A stretch of 21,166 nt of DNA from Octopus sinensis (GCF_006345805.1 NW_021823771.1:1-21166); one strand, 5' to 3'; positions 3,261-20,352 are shown, counted from the first letter of the stretch. The notes: generated by a model not told the origin, from the sequence alone. Numbers and translations: made by a program.

Positions 3261-3602
3261 CTAAACAAAACAGTATTTTGAGAAAAGCTGGATAGGCTAT
3301 GTTGTTGTATTTTGTTGTTTGTTGACAACAAAGTTTATAAAGAGAAAAGCAATAATTGCAAATATTTCTATTGTAAAATTAAATTGGAATGATGTTTTAT
3401 GTTTCATTTGTGCCCATTCTACTGGTTTATTTTGGGAGAAAACCTACAAAACCCCTCATAATAAATAGACTTTATCTAATTGTGTTTGTATTTATATACA
3501 CATGCATACATATATATGAATGAAGGTGTATAATATATACACAAGATGACATATGTATATTTATACATCCATACGTCTGTATGTATGTATGATGATCATC
3601 AT

Positions 3603-3770
3603 TTTACCCCCATTTTCCATTCTGGAATGGGTTGGATGGTTCAAAGAATATCTTGCCTGAAGTTACATTTTCTGGTTTTCTTTCTGCAGCTGGATGCTCT
3701 TCCTGACACCACCACTGCACAATGTGCACTGGGTGCATCTTATGGCACCATCGCTAGAGACGATCGCCAT
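3603..3770 (-). mobile_element. Decayed 3' part of HP element
   Basis: Degenerate match to the HP tail: TTTTCCATTCTGGAATGGGTTGGA ... CAGCTGGATGCTCTTCCTGACACCACCACT. Confidence 0.55.
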
Positions 3771-4196: not shown

Positions 4197-4563
4197 AAAT
4201 CAAAATCAAAATCCAAGTCAATCAACATCAATGGAAATTGTAGTTGTGATACCAGTGCCGGTGGTATGTAAAAGAACCATCTGAACGTGACCGTAGCCAG
4301 CGCCGCCCGACTGGCCTTCGTGCTGGTAGCATAAAAAGCACCATCCGATCATGGCCATTGCCAGCATCGCCTGGCCCCCGTGCCGGTGGCACATAAAAGC
4401 ACCCACTACACTCACGGAGTGGTTGGTGTTACGAAGGACATCCAGCTGTAGAAACTTTGCCAGATCAGACTGGGCCTGTGCAGCCTTCTGGTTTCCCACA
4501 CCCCAGTTGAACCGTCCAACCCATGCTAGCATTGAAAGCGGATGGTAATATAATGATGATGAT
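4197..4563 (+). mobile_element. HP element: (AAATC)n - head - ~63-bp hairpin repeats - retroposon-like 3' end with (GAT)n tail
   Basis: Starts AAATCAAAATCAAAATC, carries 2-3 subrepeats, then GGTTGGTGTTACGAAGGACATCCAGCTGTAGAAAC...CCAACCCATGCTAGCAT...GATGATGAT. Homologous to 5395-5727, 6915-7400, 14142-14450 and 18323-20113. The short-repeat tail is typical of RTE-mobilised elements (inference). Confidence 0.85.
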
Positions 4564-4899
4564 ATATATATATATATATATGTATATATATTATATATAT
4601 ACATATATACCTTCACATACTCCATGTACAAATATTTGTGTCTATGTATGTTTATAGATATGAATCAATGAACGACAAAAGAACAAGAGTTACGTAGACA
4701 CCTTCATTAGCTTCCAGCTGTTTCTGCTACAGGAAGCAGTGAACTCGAGCTGAGTGTGTGTGCGCGTAGGTGTCTGTGCATTTGTTTATGTTTGCAATCT
4801 CTTTTAAGTTGCTCCAGGCAGAAACATGTCAACCAATCACCCCCACCTTGGAAGACATGGGAAATAAAACTTTTGTTCTTGCAAAATGGTTTTGGGAGC

Positions 4900-5215
4900 A
4901 ATAGGAAGGCTGTCTGTAAAACAATGCTTCAATAATATATTCACCTAACCCATGCCAGCATACAAAATCAGATGTAATATCAAACCAAGTAAACCCATGT
5001 TTATACATTCATATACTTTTATGCATACATAAACACATACACACGTGTGTGTGTGTGCATCTGGTGTTAAGAAGATCATCATCCAGCTGTAGAAATCTTG
5101 CCAAATCTTTCATTGGAGCTCAGCAATGTCCTCTGGTTCACTGCTTCCTCGTCAACTGTCCTACCCATGCCAGTTAGGGAAAATGGATGTCAAACCTTTA
5201 TAATATATCAGATGA
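4900..5215 (+). mobile_element. Two decayed HP-element 3' fragments
   Basis: AGGAAGGCTGTCTGTAAAAC...AACCCATGCCAGCAT (~4903-4960) and CATCCAGCTGTAGAAA...ACCCATGCCAGT...GGATGTCAAAC (~5080-5196). Confidence 0.55.
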
Positions 5216-5251
5216 TGTATTTTCTCTCTCATAATTTTGTTTATTTATATA

Positions 5252-5303
<52 letters not shown>

Positions 5304-5326
5304 ATATATATATATATATATATACA

Positions 5327-5374
5327 TCCAACCCATACTAGCATGGAAAACGGACGCTAAACGATGATGATGAT
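5327..5374 (+). mobile_element. Isolated HP-element 3' tail fragment
   Basis: TCCAACCCATACTAGCATGGAAAACGGACGCTAAACGATGATGATGAT, embedded in a (TA)n tract. Confidence 0.8.
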
Positions 5375-5394
5375 ATTATATATATATGTTATGT

Positions 5395-5727
5395 ATCATC
5401 ATCATCATCGTTTTAACGTCTGCCTTCCATGCTAGCATGGGTTGGACGATTTTGACTGAGGGCTGGCAAACCAGATGGCTGCTTCAGGCTCCAATGTTTA
5501 TCTGGCAGAGTTTCTACAGCTGGATGCCCTTCCTAATGCCAACCACTCCGAGACTGTAGTGGGTGCATTTTACATGCCAGTCAGGCAGTACTGGCAACGA
5601 CCTCGCTCGAATGGTGTCTTTTACGTTCCACTGACACGGAAGCCAGTTAACCACTCTGGCAACGATCACGCTTGGATGGTGCTCTTAGCACCCTACTAGC
5701 CCAGGCACAAGTGCCAGTAAGGCGACG
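5395..5727 (-). mobile_element. HP element, 5'-truncated
   Basis: (CAT)n-CGTTTTAACGTC...CCATGCTAGCATGGGTTGGA...CTACAGCTGGATGCCCTTCCTAATGCCAACCACTCCGAG, followed by ~2.5 hairpin subrepeats. Confidence 0.85.
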
Positions 5728-5741
5728 TGTATATATATATA

Positions 5742-6089
5742 TTCTTTTATTCTTGTACTTGCTTCAGTCATTTGAGTGTGGCCATGCTGGAGCACTGCCT
5801 TTAGTCAAACAAATCACCTGAGGACTTATTCTTTCTAAGACCAATACTTATTCTATTGGTCTCTTTAGCCAAATTGCTAAGTTACAGGGATGTAAACATA
5901 CCAATATTGGTTGTCAAGCTCTGTTGGTGGGAGAAGCAGAGACACATAAATATATCTGATGGGCTTCTTTCAGTTTCCGTCTAACAGATCCACTCACAAG
6001 GTTTTGATTTGCCCAATGTGCCATGCAATGGGACTGAACCCAGAGCCATGTGGTTGGCAAGCATGCTTCTTACCACACAACCACTCTTG
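5742..6089 (-). mobile_element. SINE-A, full length (tRNA-derived head + short linker + 3' half)
   Basis: The minus strand has an A-box-like GGTTGTGTGGTAAG and a B-box GGTTCAGTCCC in the head (~5958-6089). The 3' half (~5742-5935) is homologous to five other copies in the window. Confidence 0.85.
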
Positions 6090-6157
6090 TGCCCTTGCCC
6101 CACTGCTTCTAATTCTTGTCACCTCCCACATTACCATTCCCCCTTTACGTTGTCTCT

Positions 6158-6191
6158 CATAATATATATATATATGTTATGTATGTATATA

Positions 6192-6270
<79 letters not shown>
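6158..6270. repeat. (TA)n microsatellite
   Basis: Direct observation. Confidence 0.95.
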
Positions 6271-6273
<3 letters not shown>

Positions 6274-6274
<1 letters not shown>

Positions 6275-6642
6275 CTCTCTCTATATAAACGGCAGTTTGT
6301 CTGGTGTATGTTTCTGTGTGTCTGTTAGGTTGTACCCTCACCCTGACCACGGCTTTCACACCTATCTGATGAAACTTGACACACACATAGCCCAATGTCA
6401 TAATTCAAAACTAACGCAGCGAAAATTTTGAAAGTTCCCCCATTCTGAAAAAAATCGATAAATTCGACATGGGGTCGAGAATCAGAAACACAAACCACAG
6501 ACTGTCTAGGGGACGCAACTCCACCTTTTTAACTCTCAAAAATAAATTTACCAAATTTTTTTTCCATTATTTTGCTATAACTCTCTAAAATGCTTTATAG
6601 TTATTTCCCTTACAAACCCGAGCAACGCCGGGATACTGCTAG
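6274..6642 (+). mobile_element. Non-autonomous Helitron
   Basis: A|TC start (6274), 3' hairpin CCCG-AGCAACGC-CGGG (6617-6632) then CTAG|T (6639-6643). Inserted between A and T in TA repeats with no TSD. The last ~85 bp match 12157-12240 in reverse. Confidence 0.85.
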
Positions 6643-6684
6643 TATATATATATTATATATATATATATATATATGTATATATTG

Positions 6685-6885
6685 TATTCCTTTATTTGTT
6701 TCAGTCAATTGACTGCAGCCATGCTGGAGCACCACCTGTAGTCAAATATAAACGGACCCCAGTTCTTATTCTTTGTTTTGCCCAATACTTATTCTATCAG
6801 TCTCTTTTGCCAAATCACTAAGATACAGGGACGCAAACCCACCAAAATCGGTTGTCAAGCAAAGCTGGGGGACAAACATAAACAC
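6685..6885 (-). mobile_element. SINE-A 3' half (partner head at 7403-7556)
   Basis: TTTCAGTCAATTGACTGCAGCCATGCTGGAGCACC...GGTTGTCAAGC matches the other SINE-A 3' halves. Confidence 0.85.
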
Positions 6886-6914
6886 AAACATATACACAAC
6901 ACACATATATATAA

Positions 6915-7400
6915 TAATCGAAATGAACCAAATTCGATGACTGGCACCCGTGCCAGTGGAGTGCTAACAGCACCATCCGAGTGTGATCATTGCCAGAGCA
7001 GCTGTCTGGCTCCCATGCTGGTGGCACATGAAAAGCACCATTTGAGCGTGATCGTTACCAGCATTGCCTCATTGGCACTTGTGCTGGTGGCACAAAAAAT
7101 GATTCGAGCGAGGTTGTTGCCAGTGCACTGGACTGGCTCCTGTACAGGTGGCACGTAAAAGGCACCATTTGAGAGTGGATGTGGCCAGTATCGCCTGGAT
7201 GGCCCTTGTGCCAGTGTAACGTAAAAGCAGCCAGTACACTCTCGGAATGGTTGGCATTAGGAAGGGTATCCAGCTATAGAAACTCTGCCAGATGAGATTG
7301 GAGCCTGGTGCAACCATCTGGTTCGCCAGTCCTCACTCAATTGTCCAACCCATCACAGCATGGAAAGCAGACGTTAAACAATGATGATGATGATGATGAT
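6915..7400 (+). mobile_element. HP element with ~4-5 divergent hairpin subrepeats, inserted in a SINE-A linker
   Basis: Subrepeats at ~6940-7235, then GGTTGGCATTAGGAAGGGTATCCAGCTATAGAAAC...GCAGACGTTAAACA(ATG)n. Confidence 0.85.
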
Positions 7401-7402
7401 AT

Positions 7403-7556
7403 CAGGCTTCTTCATTTCCGTCTACCAAATCCTCTCACAAGTCTTTGGTTGGCCTGAGGCTATAATAGTAAACTCTTGCTCAAAGTATCACGCAGTGGAA
7501 CTGAACCCGGAACTATGTGGTTGGGAAGTAAGCTTCTTACCACACAGCCACTCCTG
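7403..7556 (-). mobile_element. SINE-A tRNA-derived head
   Basis: Reverse complement reads CAGGAGTGGCTGTGTGGTAAGAAGCTT...CCGGGTTCAGTTCCACTGCGTG (A/B boxes). Confidence 0.85.
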
Positions 7557-8087
7557 TGTGTGTGTATATATATATATACACCACAGATTCACAAACCAAA
7601 AGATCCTGACTCCATACGGATTTATAGTTGCAGAGCTTATGCTGGGAATGGCCAATGAGCTGGTGTTGACAACAACAACAACAACAGAAGCACAGTGGCA
7701 GTGACCGGATGGGTGTCTTTGAGACCAGAGCCTTAAACGACTGAAAAAAGTGGAAGGGTCAACTACAACAGTTGTTGCAGACTTGATAATATAAACAAAG
7801 AGAAGAACGATGAAAGAGGGAGGAAATGGATGAAGAGGAGGCATGTAAATAAACTCTGGGTCTACATTGATGGAAATAAGTTGAAAAACAGCATCAGAAG
7901 ATCTGACCTCTCTGGCTGTTATTTAAAATCAAAGTGGTCAACCAGATGACATAAGATATAGAATGACTTGAAGAGATTTGAAATCTGGAGGAGCCTTTCT
8001 CTCTACTTGTGTAACCCCTGGCAATGTCTTGCACGTAGAAAGAAAGAAGTGGTTGAAGAGGAAGAACAACAACAATGATGACAAATC

Positions 8088-8228
8088 TACTCCAGTACTT
8101 GACTGGTTTCTTTATCAATCATATATAAAGTAAAGCTGACCTCACTTGGTATTGAACTCAGGGCACCAGAGCAGATACTGGAAACAGTCTTTTAGTAAAA
8201 TGTGTGAATGCCTTTGCCAACTGACCCC
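8088..8228 (-). mobile_element. Decayed second tRNA-derived SINE (SINE-B)
   Basis: Reverse complement has a B-box-like GAGTTCAATACC followed by GGTCAGCTTTAC. Resembles 9104-9232 in the opposite orientation. Heavily decayed. Confidence 0.45.
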
Positions 8229-9103
8229 TTTTTACATGAATAAGTTCACTTGTTTAACTGTTTGATTTCTATGAATATATTATTGCTTGAGAGAGCATCA
8301 TTAGAGAAACATACCAGGTCGTACCTTGGCCAGGTAATAACAAATGATTAATTAAATTATACACAGGTGCATGTTCATTGGTATATCTGATGTTACCTTG
8401 GAATTGTTTAATTTTTAGACAATTCTCTTGGTTAACTTAAAGAAATATACAAATTTATAACATAGATTATTATTATTAAAATTACATATTTAAATGTAAT
8501 TTATAAAAATATATTAAAAATACAATATTTTTTAATTTAATAGGATGCTTAACTTTTTATAATTCCAAAATACAATTTATAAAGTTGAAATATTGAAACA
8601 TTAAAATTATTTTTATAAACAGTAAATATATTTAAAAGAAAGAAATACATTTGTTTAAAATATATTAAAACTATGATTTCCATTTTTGATTTTTACTGAA
8701 AGTTAATTCTTGTCTAGCAATGCTATAGTCAAAAACTCTCTAACCATGACCCTCCATAAGTTGTCATGATTGAATATGTTTTTAGGGCATTTTAGGGACT
8801 TTGTTGTTAGTTTGTAAGAATTTATAATAAATGCAGACAAGGTGAAGTAATTCTCAGAAGCCATCCATCTGATAAATATATTGAAGATGGTGAGAAAACA
8901 TATTTAATGCATTGCACCTTAAAATGTTGATGTAGGATAAGATGTGCTGAGAGAGAAAATATATGTTGTCACCAAATTGTTTAATATTTAAACAATTCTT
9001 CTTGTTTGCTTCAAGATATAAAATAGAAATGAAATCACCAGAACAATTCCATTTATATACAAAGTTTAATATTGAAATAAAAAATCAGTTAAAATATTTC
9101 AAT

Positions 9104-9232
9104 TAGTAGAGTCGTTAGAATGGTATTAGTACTGACACTTTGTGTTCTGGTTCAAATTCTGGCATGGTCAACTTTGACTTTTATTATGCAGGGGTCAATA
9201 ATTAAATACTAGTTTGAGGTGGTAGAATTAAA
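9104..9232 (+). mobile_element. Decayed SINE-B
   Basis: TAGTAGAGTCGTTAGA (A-box-like) ... TTCTGGTTCAAATTCTGGCATGGTCAACTTTG ... GGGGTCAATAATTAAATACTAG. Confidence 0.5.
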
Positions 9233-10128
9233 TATTGGACACGATGCCTTCCAGTAGGTAATGTGGTTCTTTATGAACTGAGTTCAAATCCCATTGTGGC
9301 CACCCTATGTTGCAGACTAAATCTATCACCAAATTTCACACCAAAAGCTGGCCCCTGAGCTGCTTTTAGCAGAGGATTTCTCTTTTGTCTGCATTCACAT
9401 TAGGCCCTTGTTTTGAGAATGTGTTTCTCCCACTCATCCCTGTCAGAGACCCTGGAAAATGAAAGGGTCGTATGCAAGGACCTTCTCCCTCAACAAACCT
9501 TTAAAAAATTAAGTTTATGAAAACAGCCAATTAATTTATCTGCCATGAAATTAATTTGCAAATTTTAATTTCACTTGAGACTTAGAAATCCACTTTAACT
9601 ACGTAAAATGATGTATCCTTAGATGAACATTTCCATCAAATAGTTTTGACATAGTTATAACACAACCATACTTTATATTCTGGAAATGAAAGGTTTTACG
9701 TGTGATGTGACCTGCAAAATGTTTTACAACGTCTAGTCTATAAATGGTGTGTGCAAATAAACCACTATCTATATAACAGTATATTTATGTTTGAATAAGT
9801 CTAATGAATGTTTAGCAGTGTAAATGTGGTGGTAAATTGTGTGTTAAATAAATAGGAGAAGAATATTATTTACCAGGGTTGTTATTGGTTTTTGATACTG
9901 GCTTGAAGTCTTTCTGTCTCAGAAATATTCTGTGAGTCTGCTTCGCTCGAACAGCAATGAAGATATGGCAACAGTTAAGAGGATACTTATAATATATCCG
10001 GAGTAGTAGGCATTGCCTCCTCATGTGTGGTGTGTGTGTGTATACATCTTTATGTATGTATGTATATATAGATGGATATACACATACATACATGTCTTTG
10101 TGTATTACATTCTATGTGTGTATAGGTG

Positions 10129-10455
10129 TGGGAGTGGCTGTGTAGTAAGTAGATGGCTTACCAACCACATGGCTCTGGGTTCAGTCCCACTGTGTGGCAC
10201 CTTGCACAAGTGACTTCTACTATAGCCTGGGGCCAACCAAAGCCTTGTGAGTAGATTTGGTAGATGGAAACTGAAAGAAGCCCATTCTCTATATATATGT
10301 ATGTGTGTGTATATGTCCCCCATAGCTTAGCAGTTTAGCAAAAGAGACTGATAGAATAAGTACTAGGCTTACAAAGAAAAAATACTGGGGTCGATTTGCT
10401 CAATTAAAGGCAGTGCTCCAGCATAGCCATAGTCTTGTTAGAAATAATAAAGAAA
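10129..10455 (+). mobile_element. SINE-A, near full length with an internal deletion in the 3' half
   Basis: A-box-like TGGCTGTGTAGTAA and B box GGTTCAGTCCC (10178-10188), TA/TG linker, then TAGCAAAAGAGACTGATAGAATAAGTACTAGGCTTAC...GGGGTCGATTTGCTC...GTGCTCCAGCAT. Confidence 0.88.
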
Positions 10456-10791
10456 TTTTCCTGAAATAACATACAACCTTCTCATAAATACACACACATA
10501 TATATAGATATGCTTATTTTTATATACTATGTATATATATATGTGTATATACATATACACATACACACACACTCACATGTTTATATATACACATGTATGT
10601 ATATATATATATATCTGTGTATATGTCTGTGTAACACAACTATGGTGTTACTGTTGTGAAACCGGCATTTCTTATGCTTGAAGAATTTTGGTATTGGTCT
10701 GGAATCCAACAGCCCAGAGCTCAGGTTGGGTTTCTCTGCAAATAATCTACCAGGAACTAACTTATATGTATGTGTGCACATATGTATATGT

Positions 10792-10995
10792 ATTCTCTTA
10801 TTCCTTTACTTGTTTCAGTAATTTGATGTGGTCATGCTGGAGCACCACCTTTAGAAAGAAATCGATCCGAGGACTTACTCTTTGTAAGCTTAGTAGTTTT
10901 TCTATGGTCTTTTTTGCTGAACTGCCAAGTTATAGGGGTGTAAACACAGCAACACTGGTTCTCAAACGATGGTGAGGGTGGACAGTCACAGATGC
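10792..10995 (-). mobile_element. SINE-A 3' half (candidate partner head at 14702-14847)
   Basis: TTTACTTGTTTCAG...CATGCTGGAGCACCACC...AATCGATCCGAGGACTTA...; followed by the CA/TA linker. Confidence 0.85.
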
Positions 10996-10998
10996 ACA

Positions 10999-11000
<2 letters not shown>

Positions 11001-11053
<53 letters not shown>

Positions 11054-11255
11054 GAATGAGTATTTTTCCTTGTTAACAATTACACAGAAGAAATCCTATA
11101 CAAACAGGTACAGGAAGTAAAAGAATTTGAACAACACCCGTGTTTAACTCCATATCTATCTACTATCTATCTATCTACATCTATCTATCTATCTATCTAT
11201 CTATATCTATCTATCTATCTATCTATTATCTATTATCTATCTATCTATCTATATA
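11001..11255. repeat. (TA)n and (TATC)n microsatellites
   Basis: (TA)n at ~11002-11050 and (TATC)n at ~11113-11255. Confidence 0.9.
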
Positions 11256-11790
11256 TCTATATATATATATATATAAAACTATCTATATTATCTATATATA
11301 ACTATATGAATATCGTCTATTTACAGACTGTGGATCGCTTGTCGCTTTCACATGCCACACCCTCCGTTCCGATTCGCTCCAAACAGTCACTGACATGTAG
11401 AATGAGGTGACGATGCGCGTGGCTACCTTACAATCCCTATCTTCTTGGATCGCTTTCAATGCCACTCACCTCCCTCCGATTCGCTCCAAAATTTACACAG
11501 GACATTATGAATGGAGGTGACGATGCGCGTGGGCTACCTTAGAAATCCCTATCTTAAAGGTGTGGTTGCTAGGGGCCATCTTCCATCTTCACCCACTACT
11601 TCCTCCTACCTCTCAGTACTCTCTCATAACTTTCACTTTCCAAGTCCACTACCGTTATTTAAAGTATCTGTCACTATCGCTATTTCCTTTCTTTTTCACG
11701 ACACTGTTTCCTACCTTCCTATCACATCGGCGTTGTTCTTTTAAGTATATGTCTGTCACCAACAAACGACACACGAGCATGAGAACAAAT
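11256..11790 (+). mobile_element. Probable Helitron-like 5' segment containing a ~115-bp tandem duplication
   Basis: A|TCTATATATA...AAAACT start typical of Helitron 5' ends. Repeat units start TGGATCGCTT at 11331 and 11446 and share CCGATTCGCTCCAAA and GAGGTGACGATGCGCGTGG-CTACCTTA-AATCCCTATCTT. Confidence 0.5.
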
Positions 11791-11820
11791 ATTATGAATC
11801 AGATATTCTTGCGTTCATTT

Positions 11821-12006
11821 ATGTGTGTGTGTGTGTGTTCTATATATAAATATGTATATATAATGTATGTGTGTGTGTGTGTGTGTTCTATATATAAATA
11901 TGTATATATAATGTATGCGTGTGTGTGTGTGTTCTATATATAAATATGTATATATAAGGTATGTGTGTGTGTGTGTGTTCTATATATAAATATGTATATA
12001 TAATGT
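11821..12006. repeat. Minisatellite, 4 x ~46 bp
   Basis: Unit AT(GT)n-TCTATATATAAATATGTATATATAA(T/G)GT repeated four times. Confidence 0.92.
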
Positions 12007-12156
12007 ATATATACAAAGTGTATGTATCTGTATTTATATATATTTAACTTTTTCATACTTTTTCATAGTTATATATATTTTTAAACAAATTATAAATATA
12101 ATTTAATAATTTTATTTTCAATTTAAATAATTTAAAGTTTTCAATTTTATATTTTA

Positions 12157-13141
12157 CTAGCAGTATCGCCTGGCGTTGCTCGGATTTGTAAGGGAAATAA
12201 CTATATAAGCATTTTTAGTGAGTTATAGCAAAAAAAATAGCAAAAAATGCATTAAAAATGAATAAAAAATTATAGTAATTTTTTTTTTATCGTTGACTCA
12301 TCGTAGACATTTTTAGAGAGTTACTTCCCTTATATAATAGAAAAATGCATTAAAATGGAATAAAAAATGATGGTAATTTTTTTTTTAATCGTTGACTCAT
12401 CGTAGACATTTTTAGAGAGTTACTTCCCTTATATAATAGCGAAAAATGCATTAAAATGGAATAAAGAATGATGGTAATTTTTTTTTAAATCGTAGACTAA
12501 TACCCAGAAGGGCTTGATATGAATCACGACTATAAGATACCCGGTTTTGGTTACACTGCACCGCAAAATGTGGGAGTAGTTAGGAATCTAAATCGTAGGA
12601 GACAGGCACACAACCTTACTTTTATATATAAAGATTTGTGCAACAACTAAAACATTCGGTTGTGCAAATTGTTTGCACAGGAAACCTGCCCTGTGTGGCG
12701 GTAATTGCCTTTTTGTGGATCTGTTTCAGCTTTTTAGCGATTTCTGTTTTGGCGACTTCAAGCCATGAAGTCGTTGTTCTAAAAGAACGCTGGTCTCCTT
12801 CACAACGCATTACGACGTTGATTTCTTACACTCCCTTCCCCACAGCTTCACGAGGGAGAAGGGGAGAAGCACACAGGTGCAGGCGTGAGCGTGGACGCCA
12901 ACTCCGCCGCCATCGACACACGAAAAAATATGCATTAAAATGGAATAAAAAAATAATGTTAAATTATTTTAAAAATCGTAGACTCATCGTAGACGCGCGC
13001 TAATACCCAGACGGGCTCGATATGAATCACGACTATAAGATACCCGAATTTGGTTAAACTGCACCGCAAAATGTGGGAGTAGTTAGGAATCTAAATCGAA
13101 GGGGACAGACACTCATACAACTACATTTTTAAATATGTAGA
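12157..13141 (-). mobile_element. Non-autonomous Helitron with duplicated 5' end and internal ~100-bp tandem repeat
   Basis: On the minus strand the 3' end is TCCGAGCAACGCCAGG hairpin + CTAG|T (12157-12160). A|TC starts occur at 12634 and 13141. The block 12445-12634 recurs at ~12925-13141. ATCGTTGACTCATCGTAGACATTTTTAGAGAG occurs at 12289 and 12388. Confidence 0.82.
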
Positions 13142-13572
13142 TATATTTTCTATGTTATTTTCTTTTTATGTTTTTGTTTTGGTTTTTTCACTGTTTGATT
13201 GCCTATTAGTGGTTTTATCTCTAATTTAATTATACAGATATATCTCATTTGTATACATTTGTATGTATAATGCGTGCACACACACACCCACACACACCAC
13301 ACACACCACACCTATATATATTATCACAATATATTAATGTGTGCATTATGTAGTCGGTCGATTCAGCTGAAAATATGCACACCTATGTTAAAGGTGCTGA
13401 CAAGTTTGCATGACAACTATTTTGTTCCTCAAATGAAAGGCGTCACCTCTAGGACAAAATTCCTCATCTTATAAATGTGGCCCCAGTAGACCCGAATGAA
13501 ATCGGGTTATATTAACCAAAATGTGAAAAGGGGTCTAAATGGGGCGGAAGGGGATTAAAATTTCAAGGAGCG

Positions 13573-13855
13573 GGTGTTTAGGAATTCTCTGTTACATCAA
13601 GCTAAAAAATTTGCGCTATCCTTTAATCGTCAATGTGTTGCCGTCCATGATAAAGAAGTTTTGAATGCTTGCCATGGTGAGTCTACTGTCGTGAGAAAGA
13701 ATCACTTCAAACTTGGTGTTTACGAATTTTCTTTTACATCAAGTTCAAAATTTACGCCAGCTGTTAAACTGTCACTACGTTGCTGTCCGTCGTTAACAAA
13801 TGCCAGCCATGGTGACTCTACTATCCTCTGATTCTATCCCTTCAAACTTTGGTTT
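13573..13855. repeat. Degenerate 142-bp tandem dimer
   Basis: GGTGTTTA(G/C)GAATT..TTACATCAAG at 13573 and 13715. GCCATGGTGA(G/C)TCTACT and CTTCAAACTT(T)GGT occur in both units. Confidence 0.75.
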
Positions 13856-14141
13856 CCAATATTTTATTATTTTTATTCAGCTCGCAAGTTCGTCTGTCCC
13901 TTTTAAATGTTAGCGTTTTGCTGTCTGCCTTCAAGCAGACCTTTCCATTGCCACTGCCTCATATTTCGATTGATCTTTCTAAATATTTTATTTCTCAACT
14001 TACTCAAGATCTTCTGTTGTTTATAAATGGAGAGGAGATAGATAAAGATAGAGAGTAAGAGAAAGCGAGGAGAGTCCGAGAGAAAAGAAAAGTAAGAGAG
14101 TGGGAAATTGAGAGAGAAAGGAGAGAGAAACAAATACGGAG

Positions 14142-14450
14142 ATCATCATCATCATCATCGTTTAACGTCCGTTTTCCGTGCTAGCACGGGTTGGGCAGTG
14201 CGACCGGGGTCTCGGAAGCCAGGAGACTGCACCAGGCTCCAGTCTGATCTGGCAGTGTTTCTACAGGTGGATGACCTTCCTAACGCCAACTACTCTGTGA
14301 GTATGTGGGGTGCTTTTTCGTGCCGTCGGCACTGGTGCCAGGGGGCTCGCAGTGGGCACGATCAGTTGGTGCTTTTTACGTGCCACGCAGCACAGAAGCA
14401 AGTCAAGGCGGTGCTGCAATCGGCCACGTTCGGATGGGGCATTTTACGTG
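14142..14450 (-). mobile_element. HP element, 5'-truncated
   Basis: (ATC)n-GTTTAACGTCCGTTTTCCGTGCTAGCACGGGTTGG...CTACAGGTGGATGACCTTCCTAACGCCAAC, plus ~2 subrepeats (GTGCC-GTC-GGCAC stem). Confidence 0.85.
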
Positions 14451-14488
14451 CTGAAAGGAAGCAACAGAAAGTAACAACCACACTCTTA

Positions 14489-14518
14489 CCGCGCGTAGAG
14501 CGGGTCACCTTCAGCTAG
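14489..14518 (+). mobile_element. Helitron-type 3' terminus
   Basis: Hairpin CCGC-GCGTAGA-GCGG, then ~11 nt, then CTAG|T (14515-14519) abutting (TA)n. Confidence 0.65.
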
Positions 14519-14637
14519 TATATATATATATACTATATATATTATATATATATATATATCATAGTACACACACACACACACAAGCACCATGCACTAGAAC
14601 AGATTAAACACCTACATAATTGCACTCAAATATTTAT

Positions 14638-14669
<32 letters not shown>

Positions 14670-14701
14670 CATATATACACAAACACACACTCATATATTC
14701 A

Positions 14702-14847
14702 GGATGGACTTCTTTCTGTTTCTGTCTACCAAAGCCACTCACAAAGCTTGGTTATAGTAGATGACACTTGCTCAAGGTGCACACGGTGGGACTGAACCTG
14801 GAACCATGTAGTTGGGAAGCAAGCCTCTTATCACAAAGACACTCCTG
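14702..14847 (-). mobile_element. SINE-A tRNA-derived head
   Basis: GACACTTGCTCAAGGTGC...GGGACTGAACCTGGAACCATG...GGGAAGCAAG...ACTCCTG; preceded by the CA/TA linker. Confidence 0.85.
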
Positions 14848-15145
14848 TTGTTATTTGGATTTGATTTTCACTTCCTCCCTCTTAAGGTCTAAAAATCCAT
14901 TTTGAAATAATTCCAGTTGTTTCCAACTGATAAAGCATTCATTTACATTTACTCAACAACTCAAGGTTTTGTTTACACATTGGTCCCCAAAATGCAAGTA
15001 TTCACATCCCACACCACCGCCACCACACAAAAAACACCCCACTCTCATCACCATCATCATCTATTCATTAGTTTCAGCTGTCATTTATTAAAAATATAAT
15101 GCTTTGTGTATTGTTTTTGTTTTCCTGTACAGGATCTCATTCTTT

Positions 15146-15189
15146 CCTCACTCTCTCTCACTTTCTCTCTATCTCTCGCTCTTTCTATC

Positions 15190-15236
<47 letters not shown>

Positions 15237-15240
15237 ACTC
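15146..15240. repeat. (TC)n microsatellite
   Basis: Direct observation. Confidence 0.9.
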
Positions 15241-15838
15241 TTCAAATAATCACTCTGAAATCATTTGATCCTTGTTGTTCTTTTGATTTCGTTTCCCCTC
15301 CCTCCCTCTCAACATCTAACAATCTGCTTTTGTGTCACAATGGCTAAGCTGCCTTTAGACAAAAATAAATATAATTGAACCTCTTTGCAAACTGATAACA
15401 CATTCATTTACAGATTCAGGGTCATCTCAAGGGTTTTGCTTTTAAAACCTTAGAAACTGTGGTTTTTTAATGATATGCATTGTTCAGTATAAATTTCACT
15501 TTCTTCAGTCTGGATGCAAATACTTACACCAACACCACCACCAACAACAACACAACAACAGCATTATCACCTTCATCATCATCATCATCACCATCACAAT
15601 CATTGTGTTATTTTGAATTTATAAAAATAAATTTATTTATTCTCTTTTTATTCCGTTCACTGATTAAAAAGGTGAAGCAGCACCTTTGGGTGTTTTCCTT
15701 TTTCCTATCAGAATACAATCTTGGATGTTTTCATATATTCATAAGTTCAATTAGAGGTGAGTTTCGCCTTAGTTAAGGATGGCACCATTCAAGGAGTTGC
15801 TGGTTAAATACCTAACATGTTTAGGGAAAATGATAGGA

Positions 15839-16013
15839 AAATGGGATCTACCAATACTATATTTGCATACACATGCATAAACTAAGAATATGCAAATGAA
15901 TAATAAATTATAGTAACTAAGGAGTTTATATACAATTATAAATATTTAGGGGTGAAAAAAGTATTCTTAGTTTATGCAAGTGAATGCAAATATAGTATTG
16001 GTATATCCCATTT
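15839..16013. repeat. 52-bp inverted repeat with 71-bp spacer (MITE-like)
   Basis: 15839-15890 versus the reverse complement of 15962-16013: 49/52 identical (AAATGGGAT[C/A]TACCAATACTATATTTGCAT[A/T]CAC[A/T]TGCATAAACTAAGAATA). Confidence 0.9.
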
Positions 16014-16091
16014 ATGTTCATTAGAAATCAAATAAATGAGGAATTATGACACATCACGAATATTTATTTCCCCACCACTGTATGTATATAT

Positions 16092-16300
16092 TTGTTTGTC
16101 TGTGGTTGTCCACACCATTGCTTGACAACCGATGTTGGTGTGTTTACATCCCTGTAACTTTGTGGTTCAGCAACAGTGACTGACAGAATGAGTACAAGGC
16201 TTACAATGAATAAGTCCTGGGGTTGATATGCCTGACTGAAGGTGGTGCTCCAACATGGCCACTGTCATGTGACTAAAACAAATAAAAGACTAAAAGAATA
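16092..16300 (+). mobile_element. SINE-A 3' half
   Basis: GCTTGACAACCGATGTTGGTGTGTTTACATCCC...AATAAGTCCTGGGG...GGTGCTCCAACATGGCC...AAATAAAAG. Confidence 0.85.
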
Positions 16301-16471
16301 TCTATACACACACACACACCACATATATATACATATGTAGTATTGACCTCTGGTGTAAAGGTCACGGCCATGCAGGGGCACCACAGTATCATCATATTCT
16401 CTATCTATCTATCTTTCTATCTTTCTTTCTATCTATTTATCTAACCATCCATCTGTATAGATATATAAACA

Positions 16472-16719
16472 CTCTTTTATTCTTTTACTTGTTTCAGCAA
16501 TGGGACTGTGGTCATGCTGGAGCAATGCCTTAAAGGGCTTTAGCCGAACAAATCGACTCCAGGCTTACTCTTTGAAAGCTTAGTACATATTCTGGCAGTC
16601 TTTTTTACCGAATGAAATTACAGGGATGTAAACACACCACCATCGGTTGTCAAGTTATGATGAGGGTGGGAGGGAGGCAGACACACAGCCAGGCACACCT
16701 ACATGCACACAATATATAT

Positions 16720-16761
<42 letters not shown>

Positions 16762-16766
16762 ATCTA

Positions 16767-16845
<79 letters not shown>

Positions 16846-17017
16846 ATATATATACATATATTTATGTCTGATGGGCTCACTTCAGTTTCCATCTGACAAG
16901 GTCCACTTACAAGGCCCGAGGTCAAAATAGAAGAAAATTGCCCTAGGTGCCATGCAGTAGGACTGAACACAGAACCCTGTGGCTGAAAAGCAAACTTCTT
17001 ACCACACAGGAACACCT
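16472..17017 (-). mobile_element. SINE-A, full length with expanded (TA)/(TATC)/(TC) linker
   Basis: 3' half at 16472-16690, compound microsatellite at ~16700-16862, head at 16866-17017 with GGACTGAAC (B box, reverse). Confidence 0.85.
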
Positions 17018-17227
17018 GTGCCTATACATTTGTGGAGCACACAAACATGTGTATATATATATATATATACACACACATATAATGTGTTTATTATGGTAGT
17101 TTGACTTTAATAGTCCCTCGTAGTGTGAAGCATTTATGTATGGTAATGCCCTGATATATAAACATATATATATGTAAATATATGTTGTATAGCTAGAATG
17201 ATGGATGTATATATATATATATATATA

Positions 17228-18045
17228 TCCATTCATATGCTCCCAGTCATCTTCCCAAATACATTCGTAAACTATGACAAGATATACTCTGACATGCGGG
17301 TTCCATTCCTTCTCTGCCGATTATATCGTAGTCTCGTTATGTTGATTTGGGGGCATCAGTCTCACAGATTTTACTTTAGAAATCCACCCCATACGTATTC
17401 AGTTAGTCTCTTGTACTGAAGCACAACCAAATCTAGACATATATTTTGGGAAGGGACCCTTTGTGAGAAAATATGCAATGCATTCATATAACTGTTGTTT
17501 CTAGCAAACTTTGTATTTAAGTTTGTGTCTGTAACTAGTTTTTGTTGTTGTATTAATTTCATTTAATAATTAAATGCAAATTAATGCCTAATTTAAAAAT
17601 ATAATTAAAAGCATGACATATAAAATGCAACTGAATGCAAGAGCTGCTAGTAATAGCAGCCAAATTTACAGAGAAAACTGCCCCATATTGTCTCACGTAA
17701 CTCCATACATAGTTATATAGCTAGAGTTGCTTGAAATAGCAGCCAAATGCCCCTCCAATCCACTCTACTTCTGAAATTAGCTACAGTTTAAAATTCTACA
17801 CCTGTTTGTCATGCAAAACAAATCCAATACAACAGGTCCATTAAACTGTGTCATTTCATATGCTAGAAACAACAGCAAGTGTTTAGCAAAAATATATACA
17901 AAGAGGGACAGAGAAAAAACTGGGAGGAAAGCAAAAACCAAAAAAAGATCGAAATATATAATGTATCAATGTTAAATGTACTTGCTAGAAATAGCAGCCA
18001 AAACTCACTGAATCACAGCTGTCTATCTATCTATTTGTCTGTCTG
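17228..18045. repeat. Composite interspersed repeat rich in GCTAGAAA(T/C)A(G/A)CAGC motifs; homologous to 20390-21166
   Basis: Shared blocks: 17232-17520 ~ 20390-20690; 17645-17895 ~ 20886-21166; 17981-18040 ~ 20709-20770. Confidence 0.75.
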
Positions 18046-18084
18046 TCTGTTTGTCTCTCTATTTATATAAATATATATATATAC

Positions 18085-18305
18085 ATTCTTTTATTCTTGT
18101 ACATTTATTTATTCTTTTATTTGTTTCAGTTATTTCACTGTGGCCCTGCTGGAGCACCACCTTACTGGGTTTCTGTCAAATAAATCTTTGTAAGTTTAGT
18201 ACTTATTCTATCAGTCTCTTTTGTCAAATCAAAGTCACAGGGACATAAACAGACCAACATTGGTTGTCATACGATGGTGATGTGTGGTGTAGGGTAGACA
18301 CACAC
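18085..18305 (-). mobile_element. SINE-A 3' half (partner head at 20201-20352)
   Basis: TTTGTTTCAG...TGCTGGAGCACCACC...GTACTTATTCTATCAGTCTCTTTTG...GGTTGTCA. Confidence 0.85.
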
Positions 18306-18322
18306 AAATGAATATGTATATA

Positions 18323-20113
18323 TCATCATCCTCATTTAATGTCCGCTTTCCATGCTAGCATGGGTTGGACGGTTCAACTGGGGTCTGGGGAGCCCGAAGG
18401 CTGCACCAGGCCAGTCAGATCTGGCAGTGTTTCTACAGCTGGATGCCCTTCCTAACGCCAACCACTCCGAGAGTGTAGTGGGTGATTTTATGTGCCACCG
18501 ACACAGGTGCCAGACGAGGCTGGCGAACGGCCACGCTCGGATGGGGTTTTTTTTTATGTGCCACCGACACAGGTGCCAGACGAGGCTGGCAGACGGCCAC
18601 GCTCGGATGGTGTTTTTATGTGCCACCGACACAAGTGCCAGATGAGGCTGGCGAACGGCCACGATCGGATGGTGTTTGTTACGTGCCCACAGCATGGAGG
18701 CCAGTCGATGCGGTACTGGCTACGGCCACGTTCGGATGGTTATTCTTGTGTGCCACCGGCACTGGTACCACAAAGATACAAATTCCATTGATGTTCATCT
18801 ATTTTGATTTGGTTTGATTTTCACTTGCCTCAACAGGTCTTCACAACTGTCACACACTTGCCTCAACAGGTCTTCACAAGTGTCATAAGAAGGAAGGTAT
18901 GCACAGGTGGACTGACTACGTCCCAGGTAGGGGCCACGGGTTATGGCCTGACTAGTCTTGCCGGGTCTTTGGATGGTGTTTTTATGTGCCACCAACACAG
19001 GTGCCAGATGAGGCTGGCGAACGGCCACGATCAGATGGTGTTTGTTACGTGCCCACAGCACGGAGGCCAGTCGATGTGGTACTGGCTACCGCCACGTTCG
19101 GATGGTTTTCTTGTGTGCTACCGGCACTGGTACCACAAAGATACAAATTCCATTGATGTTCATCTATTTTGATTTGTTTTGATTTGATTTGATTATGATT
19201 ATGATTATTATTATTATTATTATCACTTGCCTCAACAGGTCTTCACAAGTGTCATAAGAAGGAAGGTATGCACAGGTGGACTGACTACGTCCCAGGAAGG
19301 GGCCACGGGCTATGGCCTGACTAGTCTTGCCGGGTCTTCGGACAGGTGCCAGATGAGGCTGGCGAACGGCCACGATCGGATGGCGTTTGTTATGTGCCCA
19401 CAGCACGGAGGCCAGTCGATGCGGTACTGGCTACAGCCACGTTCGGATGGTTTTCTTGTGTGCCACCGGCACTGGTACCACAAAGATACAGATTCCATTG
19501 ATGTTCATCTATTTTGATTTGTTTTGATTTTTTGATTTGTTGATTTTCACTTGTCTCAACAGGTCTTCACAAGTGTCACAAGAAGGAAGGTATGCACAGG
19601 TGGACTGACTACGTCCCAGGTAGGGGCCACCACGATCGGATGGTGTTTGTTATGTGCCCACATCACAGAGGCCAGTCGATGCGGTACTGGCTACGGCCAC
19701 GTTCGGAAGGTTTTCTTGTGTGCCCCTGGTACTGGTACCACAAAGATACAAATTCCATTGATGTTCATCTATTTTGATTTGGTTTGATTTTCACTTGCCT
19801 CAACAGGTCTTCACAAGTGTCACACACTTGCCTCAACAGGTCTTCACAAGTGTCATAAGAAGGAAGGTATGCACAGGTGGACTGACTACGTCGCCGGGTC
19901 TTCGGATGGTGTTTTTATGTGCCCCCGACACAGGTGCCAGATGAGGCTGGCGAACGTCCACGATGGATGTGTTTGTTGTGCCCACAGAACGGGCCAGGTC
20001 GATGCGGTACTGGCTACGGCCACGTTCGGATGGTTTTCTTGTGTGCCACCGGTAATGGTACCACAAAGATACAAATTCCATTGATGTTCATCTATTTTGA
20101 TTTGGTTTGATTT
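18323..20113 (-). mobile_element. HP element expanded into a head-to-tail array (5 head modules, 4 'X' modules, one 3' tail)
   Basis: The marker CAAAGATACA occurs at 18771, 19136, 19481, 19741 and, as CAAAGATAC-AAATT, at 20064 (periods 365, 345, 260, 323 bp). A single (GAT)n-type tail lies at 18323-18483. Confidence 0.92.
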
Positions 20114-20200
20114 ATATATATATATATATATATGTATATGTATATGTATATGTATATCTATATATATATATATATATAACATACACATACATTCATATAT

Positions 20201-20352
20201 GATGGGTTTCTTTCAGTTTCCATCTAGCAGATCCACTCACAAGGCTTTGGTTGGCTTAAGGGTCATTTAAAAGACACTTGCCTAAGGTGCCACACAGTAG
20301 GATTGAACCTGGAAACATGTGGTTGGGAAGCAAACTTCTTATGACAGAGCCT
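20201..20352 (-). mobile_element. SINE-A tRNA-derived head
   Basis: GATGGGTTTCTTTCAGTTTCC...GACACTTGCCTAAGGTGCCACACAGTAGGATTGAACCTGG...GGTTGGGAAGCAAACTTCTT. Confidence 0.85.

Follow-up and report, generated by a model that had tools for sequence, protein, structure and literature searches.

What are the tandem, hairpin-like subrepeats that recur along a 21,166-nucleotide stretch of Octopus sinensis DNA (GCF_006345805.1 NW_021823771.1:1-21166, hereafter the window)? A first-pass annotation had described units of ~62–67 bp in which two short palindromes, GTGCC-NNN-GGCAC (stem 1) and GCCAG-(loop)-CTGGC (stem 2), stay constant while the loop varies, and had proposed selection on the structure of an RNA or single-stranded DNA, superficially like repeat-spacer or attC arrays, inside a eukaryotic retroposon. 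The likely answer, which we hold with good confidence, is that the subrepeats form the tandem body of an ordinary quasi-oligomeric Octopus retroposon, non-LTR (without long terminal repeats) and similar to a short interspersed nuclear element (SINE), rather than a new structured-RNA or spacer-array system. This answer builds on what we observed of the anatomy of the element, its orientation, the recurrence of its unit types and the absence of covariation, and with it the retroposon setting suggested for the subrepeats is borne out.

Anatomy and orientation of the element

The window consists of AT-rich, microsatellite-rich animal DNA, and self-comparison using 18330–18800 revealed five dispersed copies of the element (A to E, Table 1), one tandemly amplified block and small fragments. 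On its + strand, copy E begins with an (ATC)n run and a stem-loop (GTCCGCTTTCCATGCTAGCATGGGTTGGAC), followed by a body with a conserved core, the 62–66-bp units and a half unit; full-length copies add, in the same orientation, a junction (…AATTTCCATTGATG…), a (GATTT)n run and a block of ~130–150 bp ending in …GCCGGGTCTTC. Searching a protein database with a three-sequence profile of the translated element returned 14 matches, including 11 O. vulgaris ‘hypothetical proteins’ and two from O. bimaculoides, and these annotated Octopus proteins are translations of the SINE-like element. The genomic surroundings of eleven such SINE-derived ‘proteins’, comprising ten 20-kb O. vulgaris loci and one 41-kb O. 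bimaculoides locus (245 kb in total, with no overlap with the window), supplied extra copies. Using a hidden Markov model (HMM) of the unit, we located 102 units in 42 arrays across these loci and the window, and the collected set numbers 97; the window set comprises 19 units, and pairing statistics were computed on a sense-strand alignment of 76 non-redundant units drawn from all loci. Metagenome contigs were also considered as a source of further copies and rejected, as the 22 that matched a 20-nt core motif are all non-octopus and 19 of them share only ~34 nt with the element (TTTTTACAGCTGGATGCCCTTCCTAACGCCAACC).

Three lines of evidence establish that the RNA sense of the element is the reverse complement of the copy E + strand. 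Among the 33 core-bearing copies, the stem-loop is retained in 31 and the (ATC)n run in 30, whereas no more than 12 extend to the junction and 8 to the head, and many stop at arbitrary points within units, which is the classical 5′-truncation pattern. The end that is constant consists of a stem-loop and then a microsatellite, as in SINEs that depend on long interspersed nuclear elements (LINEs). Finally, runs of four or more T are absent from the sense strand in all seven full-length copies (440–700 nt; copy E and six in L028–L032), whereas the opposite strand carries 4–7 T4 runs per full-length copy, one in nearly every unit, in a genome of ~63% A+T. This absence of T4 runs is compatible with transcription by RNA polymerase III. 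Read in RNA sense, the element consists of a head of ~130–150 nt, (AAATC)n, the junction, n units of 62–66 nt, the core, a 3′ stem-loop formed by CGTCC..GGACG around CCATGCTAGCATGG, and a (GAT)n tail. In size and dispersal the element behaves as a SINE, with a full length of 440–700 bp and 33 core-bearing copies in 266 kb, and we found no long open reading frame (ORF) in it beyond chance frames.

Loops as inherited unit types

If the loops were acquired or private to each copy, they should not recur between loci. Instead, clustering resolved a small set of unit types, with either short loops (ACGAGG, GCGAGG and AGGACG) or long loops (TCGATGCGGTA, TCAGGCGGTA, TCGAGGCGGCR, TCCAGCGGCA, TAAGGCGACG and ACAGCTGCT), and both clustering and alignments showed that these types keep a fixed order within each subfamily, across loci and in both species. 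Six other loci align unit by unit with copies E and A, and copy C is similarly collinear with L031:6992 in O. vulgaris and L033:36538 in O. bimaculoides. The eight loops quoted in the first-pass annotation had all been read correctly; seven of them recur elsewhere within two edits and all eight within three, four of them in O. bimaculoides, while shuffled long loops gave no match at other loci. Where the window copies deviate from the type consensuses, they do so largely by changes of CG to TG or CA. The loops are about ten old, position-specific paralogous unit types that decay mostly at CpG, and they are not unique spacers, as unrelated loci carry the same types, those of a second species included. 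To the question of whether loop sets are fixed per subfamily or private per copy, the alignments answer that they are fixed, and the loops reduce to a few ancestral subrepeat types.

Unit number and a proposed mechanism

Elements in the window contain 2–4 units and a terminal half unit, in agreement with the variable copy number first reported. Across the whole sample, arrays range from 1 to 12 units, and their alignments are collinear with insertions or deletions of whole units. Because copies are 5′-truncated inside the array, much of the spread in unit number is truncation, and the remainder is whole-unit gain. Specifically, copy E has one type-1a unit more than its closest relatives, and L031:10160 has two additional type-1b units. 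At L026:16168–16912 a single subrepeat type has undergone a local 12-unit expansion, in which CTGGC is now CTGAC or CTGAG. A different kind of array, with a 137-bp period that includes tail and body, lies at L025:3712–4260 and represents a locus-specific amplification of the same SINE.

Which polymerase and which LINE serve the element, and how units come and go, we infer as follows. RNA polymerase III presumably transcribes the element, and a microsatellite-tailed LINE presumably copies it by target-primed reverse transcription. Unit number varies in two ways: most copies are 5′-truncated inside the array, and whole units have been added or removed, presumably through unequal exchange, replication slippage or slippage of the reverse transcriptase between units. 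The arms GTGCC/GGCAC and GCCAG/CTGGC were already present in the ancestral unit and passed on to every duplicate, and the loops are the hypervariable, CpG-rich, indel-prone segment of old paralogous types. As to where the unit itself came from, the 5′ arm of stem 2 (GCCAG), together with the first part of the long loop, is similar to the element’s own core palindrome (GCACCAGGCCAGTCAGATCTGGCAG), and unit type 2b aligns with the body sequence GCACCAGGCCAGTCAG with a local alignment score of 22 that only 6 of 500 shuffles reach, which suggests that the unit may have arisen by duplication of a body sequence already holding the palindrome.

Palindromic arms and tests for structure

Of the palindromes that drew attention to this locus, that of stem 2 is far more frequent than chance would allow. 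GCCAG-N(4–14)-CTGGC has 18 perfect matches in the window against 0.05 in shuffles, all at or near the subrepeats as first described, and GTGCCNNNGGCAC (stem 1) is perfect at 4 window sites and present at 13 when up to one mismatch is allowed. This excess is due to common descent and not to independent occurrences, because the sites are copies of one repeat family. The description of each subrepeat as holding both stems was too strong: an intact 5-bp Watson-Crick stem 2 is indeed present in 15 of the 19 window units, but an intact stem 1 in only 2 and both in only 1, and the corresponding counts among the 76 non-redundant units are 50, 16 and 12. A sixth pair of stem 2 had further been described as compensatory, swapping A/T at 6992–7010 for T/A at 7119–7137. 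The base difference is present, but it compares paralogous units at array positions 4 and 2, and this position holds no conserved pair and gives no support to a compensatory one: 29 of 75 units form a standard pair (UA 25, UG 2, AU 1, CG 1) and 46 are unpaired, window unit B2 and the counterpart of this unit type at L031 both carrying T.T.

Statistics over all 76 units likewise gave no sign that pairing is maintained. Considering both stems and the sixth pair, 86.7% of cells pair compared with 85.2% in shuffles; five pairs show double changes compared with 3.8 in shuffles (127 of 500 shuffles as high), and the covariation score is 0.117 compared with 0.115 (162 of 500 as high). RNAalifold predicted a consensus structure with 0 pairs. 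For the 287-nt array of copy E, the folding energy is −100.4 kcal/mol, while shuffled versions give −95.4 ± 4.9 (z = −1.03), and the fold makes use of inter-unit pairings. Taken singly, only 2 of 12 window units have the two-hairpin fold as their lowest-energy structure, and z lies between −1.9 and +0.45 in 10 of the 12. Among the type consensuses, the closing pair of stem 1 shows all four bases without compensation, and the fixed transitions in the arms are uncompensated and imply opposite strands, since in sense RNA the GTGTC of type 1a would give G.U and the ACCAG of type 2d would give A.C. With covariation at the level of shuffles, no consensus pairs and unexceptional folding energies, the proposed selection on RNA or single-stranded DNA structure finds no support in this sample, and the two outcomes that had been named in advance as speaking against it, no significant covariation and loops that are a few ancestral types, are those we observed. 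Covariation cannot, however, separate pairing from plain sequence conservation here, because the arms barely vary.

Two further candidates were set aside. An alternative fold of the short-loop units, in which the ‘loop’ pairs with the CCGAGCG linker, scores below shuffles. The asymmetry of G.U over A.C, considered as a test of strand, favors the sense strand by 56 to 31 and is dominated by one CpG site and one subfamily-diagnostic change.

Slow-evolving arms and alternative explanations

How the arms evolve depends on the level at which units are compared. Within unit types, which reflects change after insertion, non-CpG divergence is 3.5% in the arms, 4.5% in the linkers and 9.9% in the loop segment, and CpG sites diverge by 9.8%; inserted copies decay roughly evenly and neutrally. 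It is between types that we find one of several points that weigh against the array being an ordinary SINE body. The nine type consensuses differ pairwise by 10% in the arms, 18–27% in the linkers, 47% in the spacer and 61% in the loop, and invariant columns make up 14 of 20 in the arms compared with 9 of 45 elsewhere (p = 2e-4), or 14 of 16 compared with 8 of 26 when CpG columns are removed (Fisher p = 4e-4). Arms this slow between types are unexpected under a purely neutral history and match a constraint on master copies; part of the slowness may be ascertainment, as HMM detection and alignment are anchored on conserved segments. On the side of classification, no tRNA-, 5S- or 7SL-like head was detected in the window and the eleven loci, where ARAGORN found no tRNA and Rfam gave no match to such a head at E ≤ 1, and therefore the polymerase III promoter and strict SINE status are putative. 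A- and B-box-like strings are only weak ones, identified by eye, and the Rfam matches in the window and loci are solely sub-threshold and miRNA-like, on TA-rich or inverted-repeat DNA. Inspection of eight copies by eye revealed no clear target-site duplications, many copies sitting in TA microsatellites, and the sample contained no partner LINE with the same tail, as tails without the core gave only SINE-derived arrays and inverted tail pairs. The sample itself is small, about 0.01% of the genome. The contrast of constant stem and variable loop that had been reported is thus accurate as a description, in that the four arms are the most conserved and the GCCAG-CTGGC interval the most variable segment between types, but not as evidence of structural selection, and the weak residual signal from the slow arms gives hairpins or motifs a modest chance of being of consequence in the source copies.

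One way to account for this signal, unlikely in our assessment though deserving the most weight among the alternatives, is that selection in a few master copies keeps both arm pairs because each unit folds into one or two short RNA hairpins, and that a tandem array of these, with A-rich linkers between them, aids retrotransposition or RNA stability; such an array might offer a multivalent binding surface to the protein of the partner LINE or to another RNA-binding protein, with inserted copies decaying neutrally. This would make sense of arms that remain slowest between types after CpG removal, of the nine of ten GCCAG/CTGGC columns that are invariant across the nine consensuses (the tenth varies in a single type, the one that the L026 array dominates), of an intervening sequence that varies by 5 nt in length besides its divergence, and of the youngest subfamily, in which the change from GTGCC to GTGTC retains a G.U pair in the inferred sense RNA. 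Several observations speak against it: covariation is absent, albeit with low power as the arms hardly vary, RNAalifold recovers no structure, the closing pair of stem 1 varies freely, and in type 2d an A.C mismatch is fixed in the sense RNA. Stems of 5 bp that close loops of 6–11 nt are also only marginally stable. Neither the single units nor the array fold better than shuffles, and they prefer other pairings, as each unit contains five TGGC/GCCA-type motifs. If the hairpin array were nonetheless real, it would constitute a modular, repeat-built recognition domain in a SINE, with a loop that is free to vary.

The same five TGGC/GCCA motifs, which alternate in orientation, could instead point to pentamers that work through their sequence, in double-stranded DNA or in RNA, rather than through base pairing; they might serve as half-sites of a dimeric DNA-binding protein or as promoter- or enhancer-like elements. 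The 3-nt ‘loop’ of stem 1, ACC, is conserved like its arms across all units, suggesting that GTGCCACCGGCAC is conserved as a sequence, but the spacing of 6–11 nt between GCCAG and CTGGC is too variable for a rigid dimer site, and the likeness to NFI-type palindromes fails on both spacing and orientation; we therefore consider this explanation improbable. To a repeat-spacer or recombination-site system, in which constant hairpins would bracket acquired sequences as in CRISPR or integron attC arrays, we give almost no credence. The array has the superficial look of one, with its constant stems and variable loops, but the loops are 6–11 nt long, belong to about ten types in fixed order and recur at unrelated loci and in another species, and the host is an animal genome in which the units lie within a dispersed retroposon that forms a sizeable share of the genome. 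Integron attC sites in particular were rejected on the grounds of the animal genome and of 62–66-bp units with no cassettes between them. Should the arms prove to be constrained in master copies, the family would offer a workable system for studying the function of a SINE body, and the present evidence does not require such constraint.

Relation to known elements

SINEBase defines quasidimeric and quasioligomeric SINEs, among them CHRS, in which a motif of ~20 nt occurs more than 10 times and variants in repeat number were taken for separate families (PMC3531059). The octopus element resembles such CHRS-type quasi-oligomeric SINEs in that its body is a tandem internal motif whose number varies among copies and subfamilies. 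It differs in having units of 62–66 nt rather than about 20 nt, in the position-specific types of these units and in the two short palindromes that each contains, and, unlike in quasi-oligomeric SINEs, no head derived from tRNA, 5S or 7SL RNA was detected in the octopus element. SINEs with a LINE-type 3′ end carry a stem-loop and a short tandem-repeat tail, as in ‘stringent’ pairs such as UnaSINE1/UnaL2 and in SINEs mobilized by RTE elements. Like these, the octopus element has a constant 3′ stem-loop, a (GAT)n tail and ragged 5′ ends of the kind that target-primed reverse transcription typically leaves; unlike in UnaSINE1/UnaL2-type pairs, its partner LINE was not found in the sample. RTE LINEs of Octopus do carry microsatellite tails (PMC9115989).

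Conserved central domains that extend across phyla are a known feature of SINEs (PMC4758252, PMC4824008, PMC5804259), and the octopus CORE-SINE of Ohshima and Okada 1994 appears as OR1 in PMC4824008 and as OR2 in PMC4758252 and PMC5804259. In the core of the present element, a 34-nt motif (TTTCTACAGCTGGATGCCCTTCCTAACGCCAACC; window 18429–18462 and also copies A–D) is 88–97% identical to part of an otherwise unrelated repeat of ~600 bp, which we found in 19 non-octopus metagenome contigs from the Joint Genome Institute (JGI; among L001–L022). These 19 contigs are probably host DNA of another invertebrate. The motif behaves like the conserved central domain of SINE superfamilies such as Nin-DC/Deu and CORE. 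The head and junction may resemble the MIR/CORE core, as the unit may the tail hairpin of L2/MIR, and the unit might also be seen as tRNA-like, with an anticodon arm, a variable loop and a T arm.

SINE-derived minisatellites and satellites are well documented (PMC6947457). As in Alu- and B1-derived minisatellites and in SINE-derived satellites, part of the octopus SINE is amplified both inside the element and as higher-order arrays; unlike in satellites derived from transposable elements, the basic array is part of the transposing unit and not only a post-insertion expansion. In the literature consulted we found no description of the subrepeats of this family. SINEs account for 11.6% of the O. 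vulgaris genome, most of them in ‘unclassified SINE’ families (PMC13282606), and, given this large share of octopus genomes, the anatomy and orientation of the family should help annotation. The element also holds a more general caution, since in repeat families constant palindromic arms with variable loops can come from old duplicated units and CpG decay, and copy number can vary through 5′ truncation alone.

Copies in the window and neighboring repeats

The positions of all copies, fragments and related features are collected in Table 1.

Table 1. Copies of the SINE-like element, derived arrays and associated open reading frames in the window (coordinates counted from its first nucleotide).
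Feature	Coordinates	Strand	Description
Related but different repeat family, fragment	3600..3745	-	Tail-like stem-loop and CAGCTGGATGC..CTTCCT core motif in common with the element
Copy A	4197..4563	+ (RNA sense = +)	Starts at (AAATC)n, head missing; junction, half unit, 2 units (4275-4399), core with 34-bp motif, 3′ stem-loop, (GAT)n tail
ORF in SINE copy	4218-4631	-	
Tail-only fragment	5329..5374	+	3′ stem-loop and (GAT)n; tail-to-tail with copy B
Copy B	5397..5729	-	B/C subfamily; 2 units (5560-5681), the first without stem 1; subfamily-specific terminus
Copy C	6917..7401	+	B/C subfamily; 4 units (6971-7227), + strand order 2f-2d-2e-2b; then core, tail, (ATG)n
ORF in SINE copy	14108-14518	+	
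Copy D	14142..14451	-	5′-truncated within third unit; two units (14313-14439)
Copy E	18322..18969	-	Full length; on + strand: (ATC)n and stem-loop 18322-18375; body and core 18376-18484; 4 units 18485-18741; half unit and junction 18742-18801; (GATTT)n 18802-18820; ~150-nt head 18821-18969
ORF in SINE copy	18352-18645	+	
Higher-order tandem array	18971..20107	-	[1-2 units + junction + (GATTT)n + head]; units 18979-19107, 19387-19452 (and partial from 19342), 19647-19712, 19912-20035

The head of copy E contains an internal duplication of 33 bp. The higher-order array next to it comprises five copies over 18631–20113 with periods of 366, 345, 260 and 323 bp, and is part of the SINE turning into a satellite-like array.

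On the antisense strand of the SINE, one frame is open for ~100–137 codons in several copies, and the O. vulgaris assembly GCA_951406725.2 lists its equivalents (P0001–P0011) under the name ‘hypothetical predicted protein’. These annotated proteins are almost certainly annotation artefacts.

The SINE 3′ tails of the tail-only fragment and copy B together make up a hairpin at 5327–5447, with ~50 bp in each arm (−72.5 kcal/mol, z = −12.9), which gives sub-threshold Rfam matches to ‘mir-2513’ on both strands. A similar inverted tail pair lies at L027:15209–15339. If transcribed, such inverted pairs could yield long double-stranded RNA.

Two other repeats share the window with the element. Another abundant repeat family of the octopus (…TTCAGTCATTTGACTGYGGCCATGCTGGAGCACYRCC…) lies in among the SINE copies at 5745–6100, 6685–6900 and 20195–20300, and a 101-bp tandem repeat unrelated to the SINE, with ~3 copies at 84–92% identity, occupies 12236–12535.

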